Shown one piece after another: positions 18,617-60,507 of a stretch of 64,000 nt of DNA (position 1 is its first letter; the number at the start of each line of letters is the position of its first letter). Position numbers and translations under genes: made by a program. The notes beneath the pieces were generated by a model. That model was given only the letters and a program-made list of their open reading frames with translations. It was not told where the DNA came from and ran no database searches. The DNA is from Trichoplax adhaerens. Its lineage: Eukaryota; Animalia; Placozoa. Location: contig NW_002060950.1 in NCBI RefSeq assembly GCF_000150275.1, positions 1,910,106 to 1,974,105 on the forward strand. Direction: 5' to 3'.

Positions 18617-21600
18617 ATGGACTTAAACTTATTTCAATTTTTTACAAAAGATTTACCTGTTGAAGTTAAGTATATCAACAATGCTAGAGGTAAAGGACTA
18701 TTTGCTACAAATTGCTTTAATGAAGGAGACGAAATTTTTAAGGAGAACCCGCTGGTTTGCGCTCAGTTCTTATGGAATGAATTTTATAAGTATGAGGCAT
18801 GTGAATATTGTCTAAGATCCTTGGAAGATGCTGAAACTATGGCGCGAAGGTTATCTGGCAACCCCAACGTTGTCTTACCCCATAAAGAGTATTGCAGCAC
18901 GTATGCAATGGAGAATTATGTCAAATGCCCACGATGTCAGGTAGTTTATCAATACATGTATATATTAAAATCACTACGCATACGTTAACAAGACTACAGT
19001 ACTAAAGGGTTGTAGTAATCTCCGGCAGTAATTAGTTATTATGCCTCGAGGTTGTATACGCTTTGCTAATCTTAACCATGTAATAATAACATTTGAAGGA
19101 AAAGGATATTGTTGCAACGACTTTCTATTACCTACAGTAGCAACACAGTGATTGATACATATTTACTCTTTTGTTGCTCTGATGAGCAATTCAATATAGA
19201 TATGTAGATTTGTAATACTGATCTTAGGCGTCTTATTGTCTAGCTATCTCGCTGCAACACTCCGAATAAGTAGTTTATTGAACTAGCTCTTAAGACTTTG
19301 TTGTATACAAATTAACCTTGGCTTCAGTGACAATGTTGTCAAAGTATAAATCAGATTAAACTCTGTGATTTAGAAGCAGATTCATCGTAGGCTACTTAGT
19401 TACCTTCCTTACATTAATTTAACGGTTAATTGATATTGCTGCTGCTTTCGTTATCAACTATCCTGCACGGCGGTAAAAGAGTGATATGTAGTGCGTATCT
19501 GTACTGTAACACCTTGAGAAATCACTTCTTTATCGCTACTGTGAATTGTGCGCTTAGGCTAACAATGATGGATAAATCCTTGGTCTATCTTCTTTAATTA
19601 AACATTTTCAATGATTGAATGCAATTTAGACTATGTACTGCAGTTCTACGTGCTTGGAGAAGGCAGTCAAAGAATATCATCGCAGTCTATGTTGCGGTTC
19701 CAACAATTGCAGGCCGGATCATTCACTTAACAGGCTGAGAGAAACTTGGAGGTAGGTATAAAGTAATAAATGATCTATTAATTATGAATTATTATGCACG
19801 TGTAATGAGTGAATTGGTATATTTTTGATAATCCGGTGCAAGCTTCTGATAATTAGCATAAACGCGTAAATACTGTTGCTGCTACACGTACTGCATATCA
19901 TTTTATCCTACTTTTCTTCCCTATAGGAATATCCATTATCCACCAGAGACTAGCAGCATCATGCTTATAGCTAAAATGATAGCCATGATTGAACAGGTAC
20001 ATCTCTCTCTATCGCTCATACAACTTTCAAGCCAAGTGGTTTGCAAACCTATTAATTATTGATGCAATCCAGACTTTTGAGATTCTACTTGTACTATACT
20101 TTTAGGCAGATGACCCAATGGATGTGCTTAAATTGTTCTCGCAATTTTCTCGTGTAACTGCCAATAACGAAGCTCACGTAGCACACAAGTTATTTGGGAA
20201 ACAATTTGTGGTAAAGCATCTCCGTAACAGATTCTAGTTTTTTTATGTTTCAGTGAAGAGTATTTATAGTATTATGAAAAAATGCATTAAATTAATAACG
20301 TATTATTACTTCTCATCTAGGAACAGATTGAAATTCTTCGTTTGGAATTAATAAACACTTTGCCTAGTAGTAAAATCACTGAAGTAAGATTTCAATGCCT
20401 ATGCAGTGATAATCTGATAATAAACAATATTGCAATATCTAATCTAATGTTGATAAATATTGATTTACATACTTGTGAGATCTGACATAAACATTTTAAT
20501 TTAGTGGTATACACCGGGTGGTTTTCGATCTCTTCTCGCTATGATTGGAACCAACGGTCAAGGCATTGCGTCAAGGTATGCTATCGCATCAGATTAGATT
20601 CAACTTATCTCGCTAGCAAGCAGATGTCATATTCTAAGCATGAAATCAATAAATCACGAATTTATGATTTATTTTTAAAATAAATAAAAGATGAGAGGTT
20701 ATCTCGGTGCAGCAATCTTCATTGTTATTGCAATATATTGAAAGTTTTTCTAATATTAAGACTACAATCTAGTTCTTTTAGCCAGTATGCTCGAAATGTC
20801 GATGCTGCGAAATTTGAGAAACAGGAAGAAGATTACATTAATTCCTTCCTGGATCAATTGTATGCAGATATGAATGAAGGTAAGGTTATTGGTGCATTTA
20901 TTGGTTAATTTAAATTTTATTAATCGGTTCATAATAGAGTGTACGTCATCCTTTACTATAAATCCACAATTCATATTCTCTATATTTTTAGTCGATTCTA
21001 TTACACTATATGCCGTCTTTAAGTTGTTTATCATCTGTACTATTAGAATCTGGGGATTTCTTAGATTGTGAAGGTTCTGGCTTATATTTGCTACAGTCTT
21101 GCTGTAAGTGAAAAAAAAATTGTGTTCGACATATCGCCTTCACGTAAATTGTAACCATTATGATAATAGGTATAATATCATTTATCATCCTGTTCTATTG
21201 TCTAGGCAATCATGACTGTAGCCCTAATGTAGAAATAAATTTTTTGGATAATAATGCGACTTTAACGGTGAAAGCAATTAGGAACATCTCCGAAGGGCAG
21301 GTATTGTGTGTAAATATAGTCAACAGTTATTGAACTTATTTTGTGCTTATGTTTAGTTTAAAATATGTTGCAGTTAATTGTAAGGCTACAGTTATTGTTA
21401 TTACTTTTATTATTATTACTGTAAACCTAAATACAGTATACTATATCTACATTGAACGGACGTTTAAAATTCATAGTACTATTTTAGAAGACAGTATTCG
21501 CTTAACTGACCGGTGCAGTCATATGCTTTATCCATCATTGATTTCGTATGCTTATAGGAGCTTTGTATTTCGTACATCGATTCGGATATTAAAAATTGGA

Positions 21601-21849: not shown

Positions 21850-23014
21850 GGATATATGCACAAATTTGATTTCTCCTTTCTTTAACTGTAAATAAAATTA
21901 AAACACTTTGCAAAAAGCCGAAATTACATTGTATTCGATCCGTATTCGTGTGCTCGGTTCACTCTGATCATCTTTCATTTCCGTATCATAGAAAGCGAAT
22001 GCAATTATTAAATTGAGTAGCATTACATATATATTTAATTAGTGATGTTTCATGGCTACAAATAGAGCTTTGCAGCCTAAGCATTCTGTTGCTTTGACTT
22101 GCAATGGAGATTCTGATGCAATGCCATTCTAAACTAATTCGAATTATGAGCTAAACTTTTATACAACTCTACCCTCAGTACCTTCCAAAATAGTATGGTG
22201 CATACTAAACTTTTAATGTTTTCTATGGTTCAGCTAGAGGAAATGGAGCTGGACCTGAGAAAGCTTCGGCTTAGTGATCGGTCAAGGAACACGGTACAGT
22301 CTCGTACACTTACAGTGCAGTATGGTAGTACTGTTTCAATACCACTGCTTCTACGGTGTAACCATTTAATTATCTAGTAACGATGTTAAATAATATTTAT
22401 TTAATTCATTAATCAAATATATTCATTTTAACTGGAAGTATCTTCAATTAATTCATTTTTCTGTGCAACATATCCCGTCACCGCGGAATTTGCACAGGTC
22501 GGAGGTCTAGTCACAGTAGCACTGTACAGTATTTACTTCCCCGAGGCAGTACAGTATACTGTACATGGTAAACTTTTCTTTCCTGATGTTTGCCGAAAAT
22601 TTTTATTGACAGCAGTGTTGTGAGGAAATCCCCTTGATAGAGCCGACGCCATTGATAGAAAGGTACCGTTTCCTATTGGATTTGCGTTGAGTAGACCTTG
22701 ATCGGTACAGTACAATGCAGTATCCAATTGGACATTCATGTACTGTACCTTTGTTCGCTACCTTACCGATCAAATGCTGGACTACTGTATGAAATGATAG
22801 TACTGAATGAGGCGCAATACTGCGCAGTGTACAATACACTATATTGTACTGTACACTGTGCATTGTGCAGGCCCTATCAATATTTTGCATGCTATTTTTT
22901 GAGCTGTTTTTGCAAAGCTACATGCAGTTTATTATTGAAAATCGGCAAATTAATTGTGCTGCTCGTTGGTTGAAATATCCATATCTACATAAGTTGGCTT
23001 GCTATTTCACGGTC

Positions 23015-26000
23015 ATGCCTCAGCTTTCTGTGTCAGACTTTTTCAAACCCAGTGCTGGTGGAGCTAAACGTTCAGCTACTCAAGCTGGCAATGATACTAC
23101 ACCTGAAAAGAAAAAACGTGGAGAGGATAAAGGTGGCCTGTCACCTGAACAGCTTAAGCGCATGGATGAAAATCGCGCTAAAGCTTTAAGTAAGTTAATG
23201 GAGGGTAAGAATGCCCGCCTAATGAATTTGATCGGCTCGTCCTGGAAGAAAGTATTGGATTCTGAAATCAACCAGCCATATTGCAGGAAGGTATAGATTA
23301 TCAACAATCTCGAGAACATGCAATCGAAAAAGTTTGTGCAGTGCTTGTGTTTTGCCGATGGAATGATAACAACGTTCTCTGTCTATACAGTACATCAGCT
23401 AGTAGTTCGTGGATTTATCAAATTGCCATCCTTTCAACCCGTAATACGGTGTAATCATGAGCTGTCCCAAATGGCATAAGATATAGTTGTACAGTATAAG
23501 TCTGCTGTAGGTTACGATTGTATACTTTAACATCTCAGAATTAACAGAGACATGTTACTGTGCATGATGAGCTTCTTTATTTGCTTGCAACGATGCTTCA
23601 GCCGCTATCAATGTACTGTATTATTATTAATTATTGTTAGTACAGTACTGTGTTGCATAATAGCTATATAATAATTATGCGTAAATGGTGAGTGTGATTG
23701 AAAATTTTGTTTCAGCTGCTTGACTTTGTAGAGCAAGAAAGGAAAACTGCTACTATTTATCCACCAGGTGATTACATGAAATAGTCATATGATAAGTGAT
23801 TTGCGACCGGCAATTTCTGTGCAAAGTTATTATTGCACTTTTATTCGGGCATGTTTTGCAGCTTACGGTTACGCTACTTTATGCTATACTGGGTAGAGTG
23901 TTAAAGACCTGCATTAATGAGTTGCTTATCAACTCCTCATATTTGTGTCAGTTTCCTGCATGTTATAAACCATCTTCTGTTGATACTTTTGTAGTGGCTC
24001 ATTGTACCCGCTTTGCTTTGTAAAACGTTATATTTTTGGTTAAATCTGAGCTCGTTACATATCTGCAATACTTGCAGGTTCAACGTTTTCTAGATGGAAG
24101 TTAGTAGGCTAAAATTTGGTAGAGTAATTTTAACTTGACAGTTAGCAAGTGTAATGCAGGATTACAGAATTGTTGTACGCACTGCAAAAAATGAATCATA
24201 ATAGATTCTTAGTAACTCCGTTACTCCTGTGCTAACTTTTCACATGATCATAACTATAGCACTACACTGTACATCATCCATTTTTATATGAATATATTAA
24301 TTCATCTATAGAAAATCAAGTATTCACTTGGACGCAAATGTGTACGATTGAAGAGGTAAGTTGTAAATAGTGACTATGTGTGTGTATCATTACGGGTACA
24401 TCAATTACACGATATCTTACGTTTTCATTAAAATCACTGATTTTGTAAGCTAACGGTAACTATAATATCGAAAATACTGTATTAATTCATTGTTTATTTT
24501 TATGGAAACGAAATCTGTAGATCAAAGTTGTCATCCTAGGTCAAGATCCTTATCATGGACCTAAACAAGCACATGGTAAAGCTTTCTTGCATGACTACAT
24601 TTCCAAGTCAGATTGTTTGAATTGTGAAAAATATACGAGAATACTGATTAGCAGTGCATATATTTAAAAATTGAGGTGTAATGTTGTAATACCAATTGTG
24701 TAATCAAGATGTTTAAATCTATTGCAGGATTATGCTTTAGCGTACAGAAAGGTGTTGCTATTCCTCCCAGGTAGACTGACTGTATTAGTGCATCAGTAAA
24801 TAGTTCGCATTGTGCTTCATAATCTTATAGAAGTAGTTATATATGGTTATTGCAGACGCTGAGGTATTTATAATGCAGTCCATTGAAATATTAGTACAGC
24901 GTTCTAATGTAATGCATAGCTACATCAGTAAGTACCTTTTCATAGCATAACTTTACTTAGACCGTGTCGAAATAAATGACGATTGGATATATAAAACAGT
25001 TTTTGTTCAGTTGATGTTGTATGGAGATCTTAAGAATAGTAAACGACTTAAGGTAACTGCGTACAGTTGCGGATAACCTACATAGAAGGCTATAATTTAG
25101 GTCCTTATCCGGTCGCTGACTATTCTACATTTAGTATTAAGCAATGCCGTTCCTAAGGTAAACGTAAGCGAACAAAAACTAAAAAAATATGCACTACATT
25201 TCCTGCAATAGTTTGCGCAATATGTACAAGGAATTGGAACAAGATATCCCTGAATTTCAGGCTCCTTCTCACGGTGATCTTACTGAATGGGCTAAACAAG
25301 GTCCGTGTACTTGTTGTACTGTAATACATGAATGAATTCTAGCTACGGCGAGATATGCTGTAGCAGGCATGCTACATACTAGTTCTGTAGCGTATGAAAC
25401 CATACGATTCGATAGCTGTATAGCTAAAATAAGGATAGTAAATACGTACACGATCACTTACGCTGTCATTTAGTCAATCAGATCTCTAGCAATAATAGCA
25501 TGGTTTTCACTTTTAATAATTTTAAGAGTTTTGTTTACGTTCTTAGGGGTCCTTCTACTGAATGCTTGCTTGACTGTACGCGCTGGACAACCGAATTCTC
25601 ACAAAGACAAGGTTGAAATGTAATTTAACTTATAAAGTAGAGTTTAAATGGTAGAATTTTTGTTGTAAACATTTCTGTTTGACTTATCTATTTATATTTA
25701 AATTTGAGAATAATTGTATAATTCAGTATCCATAATTGTTAAGGGTTGGGAAAAATTGACTGATGCAGTTATTAAGTGGTTAAGCAAGAACTCTCGGCAT
25801 ATAGCGTTCTTACTTTGGGGTGCTTATGCTCAAAAGAAAGGTGCCTCTATAAGCAAGGTTAGTTTATGGACTGAAATATACCTGAGTTGGGACGTTACTC
25901 AGAATTTAACTAGATAGTATTTCTTTAACTAATACGCTGTGGTATTATTACAGGATAAACATTTAATCTTAAAGTGTGCTCATCCTTCACCTCTCTCTGC

Positions 26001-41700: not shown

Positions 41701-42797
41701 GAAGCAATTTGCAGCTTCTTTTTTAACCAACTACGTAATGAGTAGACTATATACTGTAGTGAGATATTATATTATCTAATCCAAGCCATGCTACTGCAAT
41801 ACCATGTTTACTCTTAAGCCATATCACGTATTTTCGATTCCCACTAACTCTAAATAGTATTGTCCTGATCATTCCATTATTATTACTGTTATCATTATTT
41901 ATCGTTTTATCCTTTTTTTTTACATATGCATGGAAGTAATTGTTAGATCTAATTATAAGATGTCCAAATTAACTTTCGATCTTACTATTTAGTTATTTGT
42001 TGTTTATTTATTTCTTAAAAATGACTTATTGTATTATAGTTGTATGAGTACACCAATTGTATTATGATCTAATTAATTTTATGATTTTCATAGTGCTAAA
42101 TAGAAGTTTTAATTAATCGCTGACTGTGAATGAAAACAATCTTGGTTGTGTACAAGCGGAGCCATTCATTCATGACACATCATTGCTTTTAATTTCTACT
42201 TCCAACAAGGTCTATCTGGTGATAGATGAGACTCTATGAGGTAGATTGCATCATTACAAGCTTGGATCAAATTAATTATTACTTCTATTTTTAAACGTTA
42301 AATTGGCCAGACGTCGGTATTTAATCCAACAATTCTTTGCTAGAATTTCATTTTATTTAAAGTGAAGCAAAGTCAACTGGTAACCATTACTGCCACAAAG
42401 CAAATCTAGGGCTATTGGTAAAGAATGAAGCATATTTATGTTTTACAATGTATAGGTAGGTTCAAATTTCACTACGATTACTACATGTCCTGCAAGCTTT
42501 TTCTCTCTCTTTGCTCTCATATCCGGAATCTGAATACTTTACCCATGAGTATACTTTGCGTGTACAATGCTGTATACGCAAATTATAATCATTTTTCATA
42601 TCGAAATAGTCTTTCCTATGTGGATTTTAAATACCTCAATATCGTTAATCAAATTATTAATAAATGTTAGTGTTACGCGTTAATATAACACCTTAACAAA
42701 ATCCCATCCTTGATATTTTACTATACATGTCGATAAGATGATATTTACTTTTAATATCTTGATACATTTTTGCATTTAATATCTATCAACTTGTAGA

Positions 42798-43346: not shown

Positions 43347-45347
43347 ATGATCCAATTCTTAGCACTGCCTTTGCTACGAATTTCCTCTACTTTCGCCAGT
43401 ATGAGTTAATTTTTAAGTCAACTAGAAAGTAGTCCAGGCTAACTCTGTAAAATGCTAATCATGATTGTATTTAATCTATAGTTTCCGTGTTTAAATTGTA
43501 TAAATTTTTAGTTATTGTTTAGTATAATGTAGTTGGCAGGATAGGTTAGATTTCGATTTAATAACCTAAATTATAAGAGATATTTGCTTATAATGAAGCC
43601 GCAACCCAATTTTTGCTCAATCTTTGAATATGCTTAGAAAGGCTGTTTATTTATTATGACTTATCCATTTTCTATTTGTAGATTATAATGCAGTAATTTC
43701 TTATCTTGATAATCATTAATTATTACTTATCATAATTTTCTCCGGTATTAAAGCATTTTACTCCCATAGCTTGATGGGAATTAATTAGTATACCCATTGA
43801 AAATTAAATATTCCTTACTTTACTAGGCAAGGGATTTTTAATCTTTAACTCAATCTTAATGACAAGTGAATGAATTTAAAATTTATAATAAATAATTAAC
43901 GGATTTATTCTTCTCATTATTCATCTGTTCTTTTAAGCTATATTATCGTTGCTGCTATGGTGTAAAACCAATGGAGAACAAATATGCCATGATACTGTTT
44001 ATATAAGTGATGAACTTGCAAGGCCAAGATATTACTATCATGACCTTAGATTGATGATCGACTTAACTCGGCATACGCTTGATTGCATCAGTAAAATCGA
44101 AAGGAGAAATGATTTCAACCTACCACTTTGTTATGAATTTCAAATCCCAATTAGCGAGGATAATGAGGTATGCAATATTAATACTGTATTTTTTGATACA
44201 CATTAGTCAAAGTCAGTAATATTACTCCAAATGCAAAACAGAAAAGGATTTAATTCGTTAGAACTGTGATTTCATTAACATGTTATAATACGGTAAAACC
44301 AAAAAATTAATATTATCGTGAAAATAAATCTGACCGTTTTTGAGGACTCATTTCTAAATTGTATCATTTTTCTTTTTCTCTATCCATTTTTATGCTCGAA
44401 TGGCAATGATAAAACGTATTATGGATCGAACAATGTGATATTTAGCCCTTTACCATATTAAATAATTCTCTGTATTATGCACATATTATAACAAGCGCAA
44501 TGAATATCATGCTATACGATCAAGTTGAAGTAAATATTACTGATCATATCGGCCTGCACTGCAATAGATCCTTGCAACGGCTAATTGAAGACTCGATGGG
44601 GATAATAACCAATCTTGAGGAGCGAATAGTAAGCCAATGGGTTTAAATCTATTTCTATTTCATAAGTTTTAAGGCAGTAATCTTATTAACTTTTATTATC
44701 GATATGATAATCTATATCATAGTATGGCTAATGTATTATCGTTACCTCTAGAATTTGGCTACATATAAAACGGACGCTATTGATCGGATAGCTTGTAATA
44801 AAGCCTGCGAGGTAACTTTTAAAATTATTCTCTCCTATTCAGTTGGTAATTATCAAAGTAGAAGTAAAAAGGAGATAAAAATTAAGGAGTAGTGGCAAAT
44901 CGGTAACTAACAATTTAATTCAAATTCCTTTTCTAGTTGGTAACATCATGTAAACATCGCCATTGCCAAAGCAATTCCACTATCAAAACTCGGTCTTGTC
45001 ACATCAAATCCTGCCAAAATCGACTATGTAGACGTAACTTTGACCCCAGACCGCATAATAAGGACTGTAAAAAACAGCAAGATAATTGCCCAGGTTTAAT
45101 TTCAGATGGTATAAAGCATTGGCAAGTGGCATTTCAGTTATTTGATAAAGCGTTAAATTATATACTATCCAACATTGAGTTGCAACTATCAAGTTCAAAT
45201 TTGCAAGAATCTATGTTGGACTTAAAATTATACATCAAAGCTTACAAAGAAGATATCAACATTGCACTAGGAAACGATTTAGCTGAAAAAAGAGATAGCT
45301 CTCCTTCACTTAAAGAAATAATTCAACATTACGCCTTCAAACCATAA
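43347..45347 (+). CDS. Secreted helical protein A, putative long-chain four-helix cytokine-like (5 coding exons, 311 aa)
   Basis: join 43347-43398,43938-44167,44446-44628,44752-44811,44937-45347; all GT-AG, phases 1,0,0,0. Signal peptide MIQFLALPLLRISSTFATILSLLLWCKTNG. Amphipathic segments RYYYHDLRLMIDLTRHTLDCISKI, PFTILNNSLYYAHIITSAMNIMLYDQ, CNRSLQRLIEDSMGIITNLEERI and DGIKHWQVAFQLFDKALNYILSNI. Several N-glycosylation sequons. The gene is well supported; the family is inferred. Confidence 0.8.
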
Positions 45348-48300
45348 ATTATAACATTATTAATGTAGAATTGCGTGATGATGCTAGTTTCTACATTAGT
45401 CCCATAAAAGTAGTTTACTAAGGACATAATAAGAATTTTCCTTACATTGGTAGTCCTACAACTTCTTATCGTCATGTTTTCGTTGTATTATAATACAACG
45501 AGCTTACTGCTCAATTTTAGTCTAAGTCTTATTTTATTAATATTAATTAATACTATTTCAGTCAATACGTTGATAAAAATTATTAGTTATGTATCCGCTT
45601 TAAATCAAAGTATTATTTATTAGATTGAGATGATAGTTTTATGTACTAATTAACTGATAAATAGGTAAGATAAAATTAATTAATGGAAAAACAAAAATAA
45701 AAATAACTAAGGCGATATTTGTTATTTCGGTTGTATTATTTTTCCAAAGGAAAAAAGTATCATCGTATTGCATCATGCGATTAATTAGAGATAATTTCCC
45801 CATTTCGTTACATGGCAATGTAGGAAGGCATGGGGCATTTATAATAAATTGGGATATGTTCATCTTAGAGTCCAATGTACAATATAATTTTCTATTTGAT
45901 TCTTAAGTTATCAAAAGAGGAACATGGGGATTATTGTATTCATTACTTTCACCTAGATCTTTATTATTGGAATATAATCTAGAGTCTTCTCAAATTTTTA
46001 GTTCGGAAATCCTAGAGTAATAATAAGAACATAAATTAACTTAATCTCCTAGATCATGTGAGATCCGTTATTATACCAATTTAATAGATTATTGCATTCA
46101 GGTGTGTCTGGTGTCTACATATTTCAAGCGATATTGTTTATTGTATAGCACTTTACTTTAGAACAGTAAAATCTGTTTTTCGGGTATTTTGTCGTCACTG
46201 CTCTACGGTAAAAGTGCTGATTCCATTTACTATAATACTATGCTCCGAATTAAATGATTAAAAATAAGAGTATTACACTACAACTAAGAAAATCGCCAAA
46301 TTTGGCTCCTTTTGGAAGAGAGGAGTAAAATGATTGATAGTTAATCTTCCGTACTTGCTGAATTAAATATATATGCACTTTGTTCTTCGAAAACATTATT
46401 CATCTTATACACTATAGCTTATCTTATTAGTATTCATGGCTGTAAATTAATTAGAGCTCACATTGCTCATTTTATCGAAAACTTTGGAAGAAACTTTAAT
46501 ATTAATTTCTTTTGTCTGTTAGCATATTTAATAATTTCTACAATATCTCCTTAAAGTAATAAATAATAATTTTCAGGAGCATATGGATTTATTTTGGTTG
46601 ATTCATTGAAGGTCGTAGATATTGTAATAACTTCCTTCATTGTAAAAGCAATAGTGTAATAATCTTCTTAGTGGCTATTGTATTACTTACATTTTATATC
46701 AATTACTACCACATACCTGTCAACTACTGATCTTTAAGCCTTGATTCATGGTTATTTATTTGTATAAATAATCAACCAGAATTAGAATTATTGACTTCAC
46801 CAAAGAAAGGCTTAGTATTAACTTTACAACTAAATTTTAAGTATATTACTTTATAGCGTAATGTAATAAATATCATGATAGAACTTATTGTAAATTTGTG
46901 AAGTAATTAATCCAATAATCCCAATCCTGCTTCAATTTGAACACAAAATTAATTATTGTTGTTTTCGCACTATACCTTATGTTGTATTATGTAAAATATA
47001 TTAATGAAGCCTGCCGAGTGTCTAGCCTTAAGATACACTAAGGTTGAACTAAAATATGACAATTTAGCAACACAGAATCATGTACTACGAAACAAAAAAA
47101 ATTAATTAATATTCTGTATTAATTACTAGAATCATAAGATTAATCATTTCTATATGATGCTCATTATCAAATCTTAATGGTGTTATGTTCTTACAGCATT
47201 TTAAAGCCAATAATGGTATTTATTTGATTGATAAGAGCTGAATCTTTAATAACGTTAATGCGTTTTATGTTACATATAATTACATCCTATAATAACTATT
47301 GATTATTGTTAACTCTTATGAATTCAAGTTCGAACATTTTGTAGGATTCTATAATTTATCACCGTTCAAAGTGAGGTCTGTCTTCTATTAATGAGAAAGT
47401 AGGAATTGTAGCTGTTTCTATTAGATTTAAACATCTTAACACTTTAACATTGATAACTGGTACTTTAATAAAATCAATCAAAAGAAGAAATTGTTTGCAT
47501 TTATTTATTGCTTTTTATTTCGGGTTGTAGTCTCTTTTTTTTATTACTTTTACTTATACCACATGTAAACAATTAAACTAGGCAGATAGTGAAACGTAAT
47601 TTACTGATTTCTACTCTTGTCTGTATTAAGCTGCAATAATACTGCTGATTCAGTCCTGTCTTTTACTGTGTTTACACGATTTAAGCTCTGAGACGGAATC
47701 ATTCTTATGCCTTTGTTTCACGTTTCTTAGTAAAAAATATTTATTTATTGACAGTCGATAACAAATTCATAAATGATGCTTACGAGTTCTGTATGGCCTA
47801 AAATATTTTATGGTAACTCAGTAACGACACCCTAATTATTATTGCTTGATTAATAATAACTAGCCGAACTTGCGGGAATTCTATAGTATACTTTAATAGC
47901 TCGACATACGTACAACTGCATCAATATGAAATGATAATTATCAAAATTTGATAAATACGCTAAAATATTGCCGATATAATTTTTACTGTACCAAAATGCA
48001 TAGAAAATTGTGTAACTGAGCTAACTAAATATCTGAAAAGCGCAAGACTCGAATGTCTGAAGAAAGCAATGCACTAATATTGATTATATATATTAGTAAA
48101 GTACGCGTATTAGAAGATATGAAATATTCATACTCATATATTCATCATCTAATACGGGCTGCTTGAAAGATCTTGCTGCCAAGTCATTGTTTAATACAAA
48201 TTCCAGAAATAAATTGTATCTTTAAGATACACATAGTACAGAAAATTGAGTCTAAATTTCTAGAATACCTGTAAAATGACGCGAAGAAATAGTTTTCTTT

Positions 48301-49533
48301 ATTGTATGTATCATTAAGAAAATAGGAAATTACATTTTACGCTAATATTTGACGTATTCTTATATCTGCGAAGTACCATAATCGTTTCAAGCCCACCTTT
48401 AACAGTTCTTAGACTGTAAATTGTAATTTTAAGAAAAGCTTATCAAATTTTCAGATATGTTCGCATTCAATTCATCTTTGTTATTTCAACTGTAATAATC
48501 TAGAAAATTATTATTTAAATAAGGTTAACAACATCGATTAGCACAATATTTTATATTACAAATCCACAGTATGTCTGCATCTACACTAAACAATTACATA
48601 GGGTTGCCTAGCCAAAAAACGATCTCACTCAAGGAATGGGTACCAACTAGTTGAGATGTGAAAAACTATGCTTTAAACTACCCAATCCTTCTTCTTCTTC
48701 TATACAATAGGTATAGTTTAAGAACCCTAAATTTAAGAGCCTTTAATTTTGCTCCGTTCTGAATATCGATTTAATGAGTACATGAATTTATATAGAATTA
48801 TAGATATTTTGGTGTTAAAATATCCAGTTTCCTTATAATATTAAAATAACGCTGTATCCCTTTTAGAAGACTGGTCTAGCTATGTTTTAGAATTATGGTA
48901 AGAATTAGTATGACAAATATATGGCGAACATAAAATTATTATGATTGTACAGTCGTGATTATTGATAAATAGAGCCAGAATCTACGAATGGAATGATCGC
49001 TTAATCTAATTTGTATTGCCGTAATTTTAAACTATTATCAACCCAATTTCTCATCAAAGTGCGGCTTGTAAGTTACCCTACAATTACAGGTCGAGCTGAA
49101 TATTATTAACTGTAAAGCTAGTAAAATAGGCAAGAAGTTCTACTATAATTGTATCTACCATTATAACTTAGTACGGTAACCTGTGCCATTTGAACGTTTT
49201 AAAGTAAAGTTAATGCAGTGAGTGTGGCTAGCTGAGATTATCATTACCGGCGATAATAATGGCATCTAGTCATATTTTAGGCACTCTAATTTTGATATCA
49301 CTTTTATTTTCAGCATTCATTGAGATTAATGAGCATGTTATCCATTTATGTATCATTTAGATTAAATAAGATACAGGATCAAGGCTTCATTACTGAAAGC
49401 GAAGCTGTTATATTATAATAGTCAAAATTGATCTAAGATTGCGGTTAAATATTAAAGTTTTATCACCATAAACCTTCTTAATTAGTTACGTAACAGTTAT
49501 ACTTAACATCATCGCATTTTTAGCTTATGAAGT

Positions 49534-50166
49534 TGTCACAAAACAGCTTTGCAACAAGATAACGCAATATACGATCAATAAGTCAATTCCTTGAACCACG
49601 TATCAAGGAACGATATCTGCACTATCACAAACACTTTTGCTCTACTAGCAGACTACACAAAGACTTAAACGCCTCGTATTTTACGTTAAACACTAAGTTG
49701 GACAATTCTTCTTTATTTCACGATATACTGCATTTATATACTATTCCTCAATAGTTCATGAGTCATAGTTAATACAATTAACATTAGAATCATTTACTGA
49801 ATTAGATATTAATTTTAGCTACTGCTCCCTTAATGCAGACAACAGAATTTACGAACATAGACATGTAATGACTAATACAGAATAGTCAGATTACGATATG
49901 TCCTATCACGGAACATTTCTATGATAATTTACAATCTACCATAAGTAAATTACAATCACAATGATTCGAACTGTAAGCAGATGATTTGCATTCCCTATTA
50001 TAACTATTATAATTTCAGTATGTGTATAAGTGTCACTGTCATAAAAAGTCAGTGCTATATTAAAATACAGTATATCCAAATTAGAAGTTAACTAAGTAAG
50101 GATAGTCTAACAGAATTATCCTAACATAGATATTTCTACTGTAATACAGTGTATAACACTGTAACA
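49534..50166. mobile_element. Solo LTR (633 bp), TGT...ACA, perfect 5-bp TSD GAAGT
   Basis: Starts TGTCACAAAAC, ends ACACTGTAACA. GAAGT at 49529-49533 and 50167-50171. A close copy lies at 59879-60507. Confidence 0.85.
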
Positions 50167-50541
50167 GAAGTAAAGAATACAATACCTTATTGCTAGACTA
50201 TAATACTTTACAAATAAGCTTGTGCGAGAAATTAATATAACCAATTTTTCCATTAGTTTGATGCTTGAGCACAACTAAATAATTTGTGTGCACTTACGTG
50301 TTCATTAATATAATATGTACTTATATTTATTTTACGAGATATGTGCATATCCTTTATATATAACTTTTACATGTTGGCCAGAATTAATATAATATTAGGC
50401 TGAAAGATAGATAGAGATAACCTTGCATATAATTTAGAATAATATTAATTTAGTTATTAGATTAGAATTACATTAATTCCGTTCGTTTATAACTTCAGCT
50501 CATTAACTTCAGACGGTCTAATTAGTAACTATGATAATCGA

Positions 50542-50903
50542 CTAATCTCGTAATTCTTTATTCTCAAATGTGTCTTTCATATCGTCGATGAATCTGGTAA
50601 AGGTGGTATAGGCTGAATAATATCTTAAACTTCTAAACAGCAATTCAATGTTGACATCAAAGCTGGCCAATAAGCTTAACCTTCTATTTATAGCGTCTTG
50701 CTGTACTGCACTTCCTTTCATTTGACATTCATCGATAATCTATTGAAAATAAGTTATAATATAAGTTATATAGGAATTAAATTTGCTTTTGTTATTCGCT
50801 ATGATTATGTATTTAATTTAAAATTACTTGATAAAGTGAATAATAACAGAAGACTGATCAGGATAGAAATATTGCTAAATTTATTCAAAGAAACTCTTTC
50901 CAT
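50542..50903 (-). pseudogene. Possible truncated third paralog (C) or 48-aa secreted peptide
   Basis: Exon 50828-50903 gives signal-like MERVSLNKFSNISILISLLLLFTLS with a phase-1 GT donor. Exon 50542-50612 gives TYTTFTRFIDDMKDTFENKELRD*, which resembles helix A of gene B (RYLVDIGRLLE). Confidence 0.3.
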
Positions 50904-52143
50904 TTTCCGGATAATCACGAGAATCAGTTTCAGCCCGTAGTTGTTTACTTTCATAAATTTAGCTAATTATAGTATTTCTACCCTGATTTTAAGCCAAAGT
51001 TCGCTATCGTTAGTTATAATTGGATATCAACAAGGTAAATTTTACATTCAAATATTTGGATTAGTTACTAATACTGGCTGTTTGTATGAAATTGTGTAGT
51101 ACCTTACTTTCATTACTAGGTTAGTGATAACATGGCTCTAGCGTATGAAATGTATGAATCGGACTTTTAAAACTTTGTGCAATTCTAACGGTCAAAGTCT
51201 ATCGGTCCATCATCAGAATTTAATGTATCATTTAATAAAATAAGTATTTAAATACATTCATCAATACTAAATTATGGATCCTGTGTATTAACCAATTTTA
51301 AATGTAAAAGAATTAATTTTATATGGTTTATCTTCTTTTCACATAAGGTAATATACTTACCTTTTTATAATTATTGTTATAAAATATATCAAACGTTGAA
51401 ATTCTATGGAAGTTTGTGAGGTTGACCTGATTGATATTAATAATGATTAATTAGAATGATTAATACAATAAACATTGAGCACTATTTTCAGAATAAAAAA
51501 AATTAATAGCTTCAATTACCTTGTGGGATTCCTAGCCTAAGTAATATTACTGTATTGCTAAGCTTTATAAAACAAGTACTGATGTAGTAAGACTAAATTT
51601 TAAAACTTATTTAAAGGTTGAGAATATGTTGGCATGTACGATTAACAGAAGTTATTATAAGTAATTTAATGTAGTTAGTATAGGTTTACTCTGCCCAAAA
51701 GTCAGATTTGATATTAGTCAGTAGTAACGAAGACATCATCATGCAACAATATTACCATGGTAGGAGGCATTTGTAGCAGATTATAATTAGCAAGAACCTA
51801 CTAGACATTTTAGACAGAAGTTCTAACTATAAATGTAAGATAATGTACATATGCATGTAAAGCATACGATTATTGATTAATTAACTAACGACAAATACTA
51901 ATATACTGCTTGATTATATTCTGATAAACATATAAAATTAATTTCACTACTTCATGAGCGAAAATAACTATTGATTTTGTCAAAGTTTAATTATTTTGCT
52001 GTTCTGATTTTAAATCAATGCAGTAAAATTTATTTCAGCACGTATGACTTGAAGAAGTAAGGATAATTTAATAAGTGTGATCTTCGTATAGAGATTATTA
52101 GCTTTATTTATTATAATACTTGTATAGCGGCGGGAGATTAACA

Positions 52144-54799
52144 TTATATTAAGGTTTTAATTCTAATTCGATTGATTTGAATAGCAACATTAATTGGATA
52201 ATTTAATAAAAGAAAATTGACGATTACTAAATACATTTTTAAAGCAATTGTAAAGACGTACTTTAATCCGTCATAAATTTTGTTTGTTGTATTGTATGTA
52301 TTGCGTAGTTTATAATTGCGTTTCTTTCTATCTAGACGTTGATGTAAATTAATATTGAACCGAAAATTCATAAAGAGAAATTAATTTTCTTCATGCTATT
52401 TCCATATTCGGTTCTTCCTAATTAAGCTATTTATATACCCTCATTTGGCATAACAGTGAATTGACTACCACTAATTCGTTTAACTATGTTATTGCATGTA
52501 ATTTCTTCTATTTGAAATAACAACTTCAAATAAAGAGCTACATGTATACTAGATATATCAGCAGGATAAGAAATTACACCAACCTACAATGCAGTTCTTT
52601 TACGTCAATTACGTAAGAACTTAGACAAAGAAATCCTTGATTTCTTCCATTCTGTAGTAAAATCATTATACTATTACTATAATTGCAATCTATAACTTAA
52701 ACAGACTCAGACTTTCTTTCTGTAGAAATTTTATGTACGGCATTTTTTCTAAGGGTTGAATAATGGTTTGATGAAAAGTACGGTGATTGTTTAAATTAAA
52801 ATATCGTGATGAAATATAATAAATATTTAAAAACTGGTAATAGGAGACATAAGGTAAAGGATTTTGAAGTCTCAGTGGCCGTACTTGAAATATTAAAATA
52901 AATTAACTAATTATAACGACCCAAATTAAATCACAATAGTATTTTCTAGTCTATTCAATAAATAATATTTAAGCATAGCGGATACCATTATTAAAGCTAG
53001 TTTTGTATGAACTGTATATAATTTGATAATGCAAATTCATCTAACATATGATAATGAAACAGTACCGCTTCTAGAACCTAATATAATAGTTTCTATTACA
53101 TCAGTAGACGAATATACCTTAGAAATAACTTCCAGGCCTAACTGTAATACATTATTGTGGTCATATATCATTAGTTAAGGGGAATTCCACAATGTATGGT
53201 TATAAATATTAATTGATCCGTTAATTAGCTGTGCAGAGTGAAAATTCGTTATCTTTCTTGGCTATTTTTAAGTCAATATTTTATCATGCCCAATAGATGA
53301 TCATTTAATAATAAAGGTGATGATGAGGCGATTGGTATTTATTATAATTATAAATTAACTTACAAAGTCTGCTATATTCAGTATGGCATTAATGATATGA
53401 TCGCGTGTGTCGTTTGATAGATGACAGTTTCTGTTTTGAATTTCATAATATCCCCTTAGTTCGTCTATACCTTGATTCAAGGCTTGTACTTGATACATTA
53501 ACGTGTGTAGTATGCTGAACGGCTAAAAATAAGGCATCAAGTATAGAGATATTATTTAATAAATTGAGAATAATCAATTTTATCTAAATCAATTATAATT
53601 ATCATTCCTACAATTAAGATATAATCTTTGAATAGATTCATTTAAACTAACGTATCATAAAGTCATTTTACATTTTAGATAGGTAATAAAAAGAAAGCAA
53701 TAACTAAATATGTCAACTTTAGATGTTAAAACTTATGAATCACAAACTAATTTCGGTGATATTCTTGGCAAATAGATGATTGCGTAAGAAACATTCATCG
53801 GTACTGCAATTAAATATTTACTTTTAATTGATTGCTTATTTACCTCGTCTTTAAGGGCAATATCTACATAAAGCAAGCTGCAAATCTGATTATTGCTAGC
53901 TAATAATTTATTGGCGTCATAAGCTTTCAGGCAAGTTGCATATTGCTTAATATCTTTTGATGATGCCTCCAATAAGCGTCCAATATCTACTAAATACCTC
54001 GATAAGGCTTCATCAGACGTAAAATGGAACGATGATAGACTCATAGCTATTGACGTAAGTGCTGAAATAATTGTTTGTAATCTTTTAGTGCTCAATATAA
54101 AAGAAGTCTCGAATCAGATAACATTATCCGAGCATCACCATCGTTATTGGTGCGATCGATATGGTGATACGAGATTAATAAATCTCTAATTATATCCTAA
54201 TTATTGAATAGTACTTCGGAAACTTATCCTGAATTCATTATTGATAGAATATAACTAGAATATTATCAAAGTAATGGTAGAATTGATCTTCTTTGAAATA
54301 ATACATAGCTAACAGATGCCAATAATGAAATTCTCATAGATTAACAATGACTTCATTGCATTGATTATGTCGATTTTAATGACCATAAAATAGCTTGTAA
54401 TCGTTCAAGCTTAGTCAGGCGTATTATAGCTACAATATTAAGTTAGAATGTTACTTTTGATTGATAGTATTATTAAGTTGATCAAATGAGATTTTTAATT
54501 GTACTTTCTAAAATTTAGAAGAATGTAATGTAAATACTGTTAAATACCAATAATACTTAATAAAATAATTTTTACAATTCATAAATTTACTACCTAAAAA
54601 CTTCCTTCAGAATAAAATTAAAAAATAAAGATATCTATATATTATTTTAGTTGAAGATAGATCGATAGATAGATAGATAGATAGGTAAAAAATTTATCTA
54701 AATTCGTAATTAGTAAAAAAATTATTACAGATTATTTTCATTATCGTTCTTACTTAAGTAAATGATGGCTTGATACTTGATATATTTCATATTGCTCAT
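52144..54799 (-). CDS. Secreted helical protein B, paralog of A (~232 aa)
   Basis: complement join 54754-54799,53844-54061,53364-53522,(53118-53141),(52584-52651),52144-52327 = 699 nt in frame. Signal MSNMKYIKYQAIIYLTLTSIAMS. Exon 2 ends ICSLLYVDIALKDE (A: LCYEFQIPISEDNE). Exon 3 starts PFSIL (A: PFTIL). The last exon has DGLKYVFTIALKMYLVIVNFLLLN (A: DGIKHWQVAFQLFDKALNYILSN). The two exons in brackets are tentative. Confidence 0.72.
54656..54684. repeat. (GATA)n microsatellite in intron 1 of gene B
   Basis: gatagatcgatagatagatagatagatag. Confidence 0.8.
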
Positions 54800-59878: not shown

Positions 59879-60507
59879 TGTCATAAAACAGCTTTGCAAC
59901 AAGATAACGCAATGTACGATCAATAAGTCAATTCCTTGAACCACGTATCAAGGAACGATATCTGCACTATCACAAACACTTTTGCTCTACTAGCAGACTA
60001 CACAAAAACTTAGACGCCTCGTATTTTACGTTAAACACTAAGTTTGAGAATCCTCTTTATTACACGATATACTGCATTTATATCTCTTCCTCAATAGTTC
60101 ATGAGTCAAAGTCAGTACGATTAACTTTGGAATCATTCACTGAATTAGATATTAATTTTAGGGGCTGCTCCCTTAATGCAGACAACAGTATTTACGAACA
60201 TAGACATCTGATGACTAATACAGAATAGTCAGATTACGATATGTCCTATCACGGAACATTTCCACGATAATTTACAATTTACCATAAGTAAGTTACAATC
60301 ACAATGATTCGAACTGTAAGTAGATGATTTGCATTCCCTATTATAAGTATTAATTTCAGTATGTGTATAAGTGTCACTGTCATAAAACGTCAGTGCTGTA
60401 TTACAACACAGTATATCCAAATTAGAAGTTAACTAAATAAGGATAGGCTAACAGAATTATCCTAACATAGATATTTCTACTCTAATACAGTATATAACAC
60501 TGTCACA
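59879..60507. mobile_element. Solo LTR (629 bp), same family, TSD ACCAG/ACCAA
   Basis: Starts TGTCATAAAAC, ends ACACTGTCACA. Colinear with 49534-50166 in the same orientation with scattered substitutions. Flanks ACCAG (59874-78) and ACCAA (60508-12). Confidence 0.82.

Follow-up and report, generated by a model that had tools for sequence, protein, structure and literature searches.

Two adjacent orphan genes of Trichoplax adhaerens, probably paralogous and with predicted secreted, helical products

Introduction

The question raised by this locus of the placozoan Trichoplax adhaerens is what kind of proteins are encoded by two convergently transcribed genes, here called A (forward strand) and B (reverse strand), which lie in a 64,000-nucleotide stretch of genomic DNA referred to as the window (C1407:1910106-1974105 of the 105.6-Mb, 1,414-contig assembly that was also used as the species' own genome in the searches described below). 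All positions are those of the window unless another sequence is named. A first-pass annotation of these letters had proposed two convergent multi-exon genes for four-helix cytokine-like ligands hidden in an apparent gene desert, and the presence of two convergent multi-exon genes is borne out, for A by RNA contigs and for B by a protein model from Trichoplax sp. H2 together with an orthologous contig. The evidence assembled here makes it likely that A and B are real orphan genes, probably paralogous, whose products are secreted and helical, and it corrects both gene models at the ends on which the proposal of a cytokine had been built.

Structure and transcription of gene A

The exon structure, transcription and splicing of gene A are directly supported by contigs from four sequencing runs of four studies, of which one is registered as RNA-Seq, while in the other three the share of sampled words that is present corresponds roughly to the exons. 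In all of them 44167 is joined to 44446, 44628 to 44752, and 44811 to 44937, each joint being of the GT..AG type, while the segments 44168-44445, 44629-44751 and 44812-44936 are skipped. Because these joints are found in the contigs of four studies, exons 2 to 5 of gene A are exactly as they had first been read, and the junctions 2-3, 3-4 and 4-5 are likewise those of the Trichoplax sp. H2 protein model P0003.

This is not so for the first exon, which had been placed at 43347-43398 (forward strand), a segment of intron 1 where the depth is zero in each of the four runs. Upstream of 43936, the contigs of every run carry letters from outside the adjoining stretch, and the nearest 30 of these, AATGAAGCATATTTATGTTTTACAATGTAT, map to 42424-42453, so that the transcripts splice ...ATGAAGCATATTTATGTTTTACAATGTATAG (42425-42455) onto 43938. 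Since the ends of the contigs match the window there, the true first coding exon is 42425-42455, and the start of gene A lies 922 bases upstream of the one previously given. This exon reads ATG...TGT ATA G, with an in-frame TAA just 5′ of it, and encodes MKHIYVLQCI plus one base, ending in phase 1 at a GTAGGT donor.

Exon 2 (43938-44167), which is covered by contig pieces at 43936-44165 in the four runs and is represented in P0003 as well as in an orthologous scaffold (L005:212-438), is entered in phase 1 and left in phase 0, and contains the end of the putative signal peptide (ILSLLLWCKTNG|EQ), a predicted first helix and a Cys-x14-Cys loop. Exon 3 (44446-44628; L005:712-900), beginning PFTILNNS, is defined by the joints in the four runs and by P0003, and exon 4 (44752-44811; L005:1061-1117), with 20 codons and the end IACNKACE, by the same joints and by both P0003 and the T. 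adhaerens model P0001. The last exon, which includes the stop codon (44937-45347; ~37% identical to L005:1207-1602), is supported by the contigs and by an exhaustive HMMER search, and encodes a Cys- and Lys/Arg-rich insert followed by a conserved C-terminal helical region (DGIK...NYILSN...). According to the contigs, the 5′ untranslated region comprises at least ~380 further letters and the 3′ untranslated region reaches to at least 45700. The resulting protein has 304 residues, and its N-terminus, MKHIYVLQCI-A-ILSLLLWCKTNG|EQIC, has a charged start followed by ~17 hydrophobic residues without charge, and ends in T-N-G as a cleavage-type site, which is kept in the form xNG| in the ortholog on L005.

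Two further observations were made on this gene. The region of the insert (44752-45110) carries dibasic sites (RR and KK), as does its counterpart in L005:1061-1370 (KK, KR and RR), and the insert may be a target of proprotein convertases, in which case the A protein could be cut into two chains. In addition, the RNA contigs of two studies (runs X9 and X10) show up to 15 differences from the window between 44485 and 45653, in exons 3 and 5 and in the 3′ untranslated region; one of these, G>A at 45081 (Asp to Asn), gives the residue of Trichoplax sp. H2, and the source of both runs is probably H2-like strains.

Structure of gene B and the signal peptides of both products

Gene B has five exons on the minus strand, of which exons 2 to 5 are found in the Trichoplax sp. 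H2 model P0005 and all five on a contig with a diverged ortholog, L007. Exon 1 (54754-54799), which is as it had been read, encodes (MSN)MKYIKYQAIIYL plus one base and ends at a GTAAGA donor; the equivalent exon of L007 (925-961) encodes MKYIKYQAIVCL plus one base and has GTGAGT as its donor. The ATG at 54790 is the conserved start codon, the upstream one being absent from L007. Exon 1 and the ~100 bases upstream of it are 76% identical to L007 at the DNA level. Exon 2 (53844-54061; L007:1233-1450), to which P0006 and P0007 also correspond at 78-79% identity, contains the end of the putative signal peptide (LTSIAMS|LSSFHF), a predicted first helix and a Cys-x16-Cys loop, and exon 3 (53364-53522; L007:1742-1900) begins PFSILHTL; both had been placed exactly where P0005 and L007 have them.

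The 3′ end of the gene had been misread. The final helix starting DGLK had been taken from an open reading frame at 52144-52371 (minus strand), which lies in intron 3, is absent from P0005 and has no similarity in L007. The exons that are actually present downstream of exon 3 are exon 4 (51361-51426; L007:3647-3712), with 22 codons (VNLTNFHRISTFDIFYNNNYKK) between AG/GTAAGT splice sites, and exon 5 (50542-50739; L007:4292-4501), which encodes IIDECQ...KELRD from 50739 to 50545, has its stop at 50542, and is the only DNA in that part of the locus that is conserved with L007. The protein of 225-228 residues begins MKYIKYQAIIYL-T-LTSIAMS|LSS(FHF), with AMG| at the equivalent site of L007, and it contains four Cys (YATC, QIC, RNC and DEC), all of which are conserved in L007 and probably form two disulfides. 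Both N-glycosylation sequons (NDT/NHT and NLT) are conserved there as well.

Read from the sequence, the N-termini of both A and B have the features of a signal peptide: the n-region is charged, a stretch of 15-17 residues is hydrophobic and uncharged, and small residues occupy -3 and -1, all of which recurs in the orthologs of both genes. On this basis, the two products would enter the secretory pathway, the signal peptide being split over exons 1 and 2. The short signal-peptide exon with a phase-1 intron that had first been described for this pair holds for the corrected models of A and B alike, and in both it is followed by three introns of phase 0.

It was also observed that intron 1 of gene B contains a short (TCTA)n-type microsatellite (54655-54700), whose pairing by blastn with a simple repeat at L007:4977-5004 is due to chance, and that gene B is flanked by two direct copies of a ~630-base sequence (49534-50166 and 59879-60507), which are 93-96% identical, lie 10.34 kb apart and are not present in the orthologous contigs L005-L007. 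The first of these copies ends ~380 bases past the stop of gene B.

Orthologs, selection and lineage restriction

The ortholog of gene A was reached through P0002, a 74-residue fragment that is 40% identical to A and is encoded on the 1,687-base ENA metagenome scaffold L005. This scaffold carries the full set of exons 2 to 5, with the acceptor and donor positions and the phases as in A. The identical residues number 27/75, 22/61, 7/18 and 50/132 for exons 2 to 5, respectively, amounting to 30-40% identity overall, and the DNA alignment is confined to three short pieces of exons. Over 286 aligned codons, the proportion of nonsynonymous differences (pN) is 0.40 and that of synonymous differences (pS) is 0.70, the latter being saturated. 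The insert of exons 4 and 5 has 9 Cys in T. adhaerens, against 10 in L005, at positions that are partly common. Gene A is thus a real gene, conserved but fast-evolving.

The diverged ortholog of gene B is present on Logan contigs from three runs (L006-L008). Identical residues in exons 2 to 5 of L007 are 55/72, 42/53, 17/22 and 40/65, and in the DNA comparison the five exons and the ~100 bases 5′ of exon 1 align, while the introns, including the open reading frame with DGLK, do not. The comparison of 212 codons gives a pN of 0.14 and a pS of 0.73, and the ratio of nonsynonymous to synonymous substitution rates (dN/dS) is ~0.05-0.09 where dS is computable, showing that gene B is under strong purifying selection.

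Three catalogued protein models represent the same two genes, P0001 and P0003 being 99% identical to the exons of A, and P0005 99% identical to those of B; these matches to T. adhaerens and Trichoplax sp. H2 entries also confirm that the DNA is that of a non-bilaterian animal, as had been supposed. P0001 (XP_002114622 / TRIADDRAFT_58652 of T. adhaerens, 196 residues) is a mis-modelled form of gene A, the first 20 residues of which are read from the wrong frame of exon 2 and joined by a splice to a point midway in exon 3. P0003 (RDD36744 / TrispH2_011533 of Trichoplax sp. H2, 255 residues) falls in the same 90% cluster and begins at an internal Met of exon 2, and P0005 (TrispH2_011534, 207 residues) is the Trichoplax sp. 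H2 model of gene B. All three lack the signal-peptide exon, start at an internal Met and are hypothetical proteins without name, domain or function. Word-based protein searches with B found no T. adhaerens model of that gene. The description of the genes as hidden is therefore apt for T. adhaerens, where A is wrongly annotated and no model of B was found, but not for Trichoplax sp. H2, where both are annotated. What is new is a corrected full-length model of each gene, with a putative signal peptide, where current annotations cut or miss it.

The restriction of the two genes to placozoan-like sequences emerges from searches of several kinds. An exhaustive HMMER search with exon 5 of A against 1.84 billion protein representatives gave two matches only, namely P0001 and the ortholog fragment P0002, and word-based searches with A and B returned exclusively placozoan-like sequences. 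In the own genome, six-frame searches with exon 2 of A, exon 5 of A and exon 2 of B found no other copies and returned self only, and tblastn with P0003 and P0005 revealed no similarity in a neighbouring locus ~15 kb beyond the window (L002), which has another exon plan. Neither a literature search nor the supplementary material of PMC12013895 and PMC10580291 turned up the gene identifiers of A and B, and the literature search returned no paper on helical cytokines in placozoans. By these sequence comparisons, A and B are placozoan-restricted genes.

Predicted fold

For structure prediction, the chain folded for B was P0005, which is B minus its first 18 residues, with alignment A3, and that for A was P0003, which is A minus its first 49 residues, with alignment A8, in which only the well-placed rows of L005 were taken in and part of its exon 3 was left out. 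AlphaFold2 gave all-helical models with an unreadable topology for both, with a predicted local distance difference test score (pLDDT) of 39.2 for B and 41.1 for A, and a predicted template modelling score (pTM) of 0.26 in each case. The ESM Atlas models are equally poor (pLDDT 0.44 and 0.39); for both proteins, the feature search of that resource gave no usable match, and the structure neighbours had template modelling (TM) scores < 0.5 except for trivial ones.

In the low-confidence model of B, helices can be mapped to residues 11-40, 67-99, 104-126 and 153-206, separated by loops at 41-66 and 127-152 and a link at 100-103. In such maps the last helix of B has 54 residues, its exon 3 encodes two helices and its exon 4 only 22 residues, and in A two to three helices follow the insert. 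Foldseek against the PDB with the B model, a comparison that is meaningless at a pLDDT of 39, yielded nothing at E <= 0.001; natural cytokines are absent from the 50 best matches, and those at the top are generic or designed helical bundles.

Possible roles outside the cell

According to the explanation preferred here, A and B would descend from one ancestral gene and would have stayed adjacent, convergently transcribed and restricted to placozoans. Their products, which bear N-glycosylation sequons and conserved Cys and are predicted to be almost wholly α-helical, would be secreted, would fold into helical bundles braced by disulfides and would serve as diffusible extracellular ligands of placozoan receptors. 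Of the two, B would be the one kept under constraint and A the fast-evolving and elaborated one, in which the pair of Cys in exon 2 that is common with B is supplemented by the Cys- and Lys/Arg-rich insert. The role as ligands is the tentative part of this explanation and is rated as less likely than not, and three points speak against the explanation as given. Both three-dimensional models are unusable, and for this reason the term bundle is an assumption; no result points to a receptor or to signalling by A or B; and a role in defence, or another one unrelated to signalling, would agree just as well with the fast evolution of A and with its cationic insert rich in Cys.

Such a role is also the main alternative to what is plausibly an extracellular-ligand function. 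Here, A and B would be secreted proteins that do not signal, serving in defence (as antimicrobial or membrane-active helical proteins) or belonging to the digestive secretion or mucus of gland- or lipophil-type cells. This is consistent with the pN of 0.40 and the low identity of A to its ortholog, with the variability of the strongly cationic insert, and with the confinement of both orphan genes to one lineage, as is usual for genes of defence and of the secretome; alpha-pore-forming toxins are likewise among the non-significant Foldseek neighbours of the B model, although this carries no evidential weight. The strong constraint on B, on the other hand, is more readily expected of a protein with a specific binding partner than of a generic effector, and Pfam gave no match to an amphipathic peptide or a known antimicrobial family. 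A non-signalling role for the pair is regarded as rather unlikely. Whether as ligands or as part of the secretome, A and B are reasonable candidates for a screen of either kind.

Common descent of A and B

The proposed derivation of both genes from one ancestor could also be replaced by the assumption that A and B are unrelated neighbours, the common features of which arose by chance or by convergence among secreted helical proteins. The genes are adjacent, convergent and only 5 kb apart, and both have five coding exons with introns in phases 1,0,0,0 and similar exon lengths (31/230/183/60/408 bases in A vs 37/218/159/66/195 in B). Both proteins start MK[HY]I. As had been noted from the letters, where exon 2 was said to end in an acidic residue and exon 3 to start PF(T/S)IL, these exons meet at Glu followed by P[FY]xxL in both genes as well as in the ortholog of each, and all four sequences have a Cys 12 residues before this boundary and another one 13-16 residues further N-terminal. 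Of the three positionally conserved Cys that had been listed, the pair in exon 2 is comparable between the genes, but the third (LHC/RNC) has only approximately the same place in the two, and its position differs in the ortholog of A.

At the level of alignment, BLASTP of P0003 vs P0005 gives a best segment with E = 0.010, which spans the exon 2/3 boundary in register, and when the first 20 residues of exon 3 are scored without gaps, the register of the exon start ranks first of ~1,450 offsets in each of the four A x B pairs. The E-value for the whole proteins is, however, only 0.01 and comes from a single comparison. Relatedness is further challenged by the exon-wise hhalign comparison of A and B, which is not significant (E 0.25-0.95), by the exon-2 tail, where the similarity to B is seen with T. 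adhaerens A only and is not significant with A of L005, and by the six-frame searches of the own genome, which with exons of either gene return only that gene itself. Because the profile comparison is not significant, paralogy rests on the gene architecture and one short motif. Taken together, the shared exon plan, the boundary motif with its upstream Cys kept in the orthologs of both genes, the first-ranking register in all four pairs, the common start and the short distance make common descent of A and B quite likely, and a chance association of unrelated genes unlikely.

Evaluation as class-I cytokines

The original proposal, that A and B are class-I long-chain four-helix-bundle cytokines (IL-6/LIF/G-CSF/Unpaired-like) acting via a cytokine-receptor-like protein on STAT, was built on a wrong exon 1 of A and a wrong 3′ end of B. 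The searches and models described here neither support nor refute it, and it is rated as improbable. Cytokine families (Pfam IL6, LIF_OSM, CNTF, EPO_TPO, Hormone_1 and others) diverge beyond sequence detection, and the absence of any cytokine family from hmmscan against Pfam (E <= 10) with P0003, P0005 and single exons is thus a weak negative. Sequence and profile searches of the PDB (E <= 10) with A and B likewise returned no solved cytokine, and neither did the language-model and structure searches described above. The proposal is favoured by the predicted secretion and helicity of the products, by the size of B (~200 residues), by the putative local disulfide after the first helix, and by the helix map of B, which in spite of its low confidence can be read as helix A, a long AB loop, helix B, a short BC loop, helix C, a long CD loop and helix D. 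The AlphaFold2 confidence is nevertheless too low for a topology, and five to six helices are as likely as four, given the 54-residue last helix of B and the helices that follow the insert in A.

The exon phases are of similarly limited value. The gene of IL-6 has one helix per exon and five coding exons with phases 1-0-0-0, a phase pattern that G-CSF also shows, and A and B agree with it in the phases. A phase-1 intron after the signal peptide followed by phase-0 introns is, however, the commonest pattern for secreted proteins, and therefore the 1-0-0-0 series is weak evidence. Exon 3 of B seems to hold two helices, unlike the IL-6 layout, and the likeness to the IL-6 gene plan is therefore one of phases only.

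A search of the genome for JAK and STAT, which had been suggested as a check, gave a divided result. STAT_alpha scores above the curated Pfam cut-off at two loci of the own genome (C1414:9845024-9845248 and C1413:8995512-8995727), which may represent two STAT-like genes and is consistent with the placozoan STAT lineage listed in STATdb (PMC4144846). STAT_bind, Jak1_Phl and the JAK FERM_F1 domain were not found in the six-frame search of the same genome; these are weak negatives, the domains being fragmented by exons and the controls having given no signal. A review places the assembly of the complete cytokine pathway in Bilateria, yet reports CRLF3 in Trichoplax (PMC12026705). There is a comparably slim chance that A and B might be ligands with a helical-cytokine fold whose signal reaches STAT via a receptor like CRLF3 or gp130, no canonical JAK being involved. 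If cytokines of this kind were nonetheless encoded here, helical-cytokine ligands would have originated before Bilateria, a question testable by experiment in Trichoplax, and the slow and fast members of the gene pair would provide a means with which to seek the receptor.

Other features of the window

Elsewhere in the window, an open reading frame piece at 18617-18988 has a SET-domain-like N-terminus by eye, and another at 22844-23296 resembles, again by eye, the N-terminal region of a uracil-DNA glycosylase. If these are housekeeping-type genes, the gene desert in which A and B had been described would start only after ~24 kb.

Comparison with known systems

The orphan pair A and B can be compared with two groups of characterized ligands. 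Like the long-chain class-I cytokines (IL-6, IL-11, LIF, CNTF and G-CSF), they are putatively secreted, of ~200 residues and helical by prediction, and they would have in common with them a local disulfide close to where the first helix ends and five exons with phases 1-0-0-0. They differ from class-I cytokines in having no detectable sequence or profile similarity to them and an apparently different mapping of exons to helices, and A differs further by its ~55-residue Cys-rich insert and extra C-terminal helices. Unlike in class-I cytokine systems, no JAK was detected in the Trichoplax genome, which, as a six-frame result, is a weak negative. The same difference applies to Unpaired of Drosophila, which acts through Domeless, Hopscotch (JAK) and Stat92E. 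The Unpaired ligands themselves (Upd1-3) are secreted, glycosylated and helical, and are too divergent for detection by BLAST; in that, they provide a precedent for cytokine-like ligands that are invisible to sequence search.

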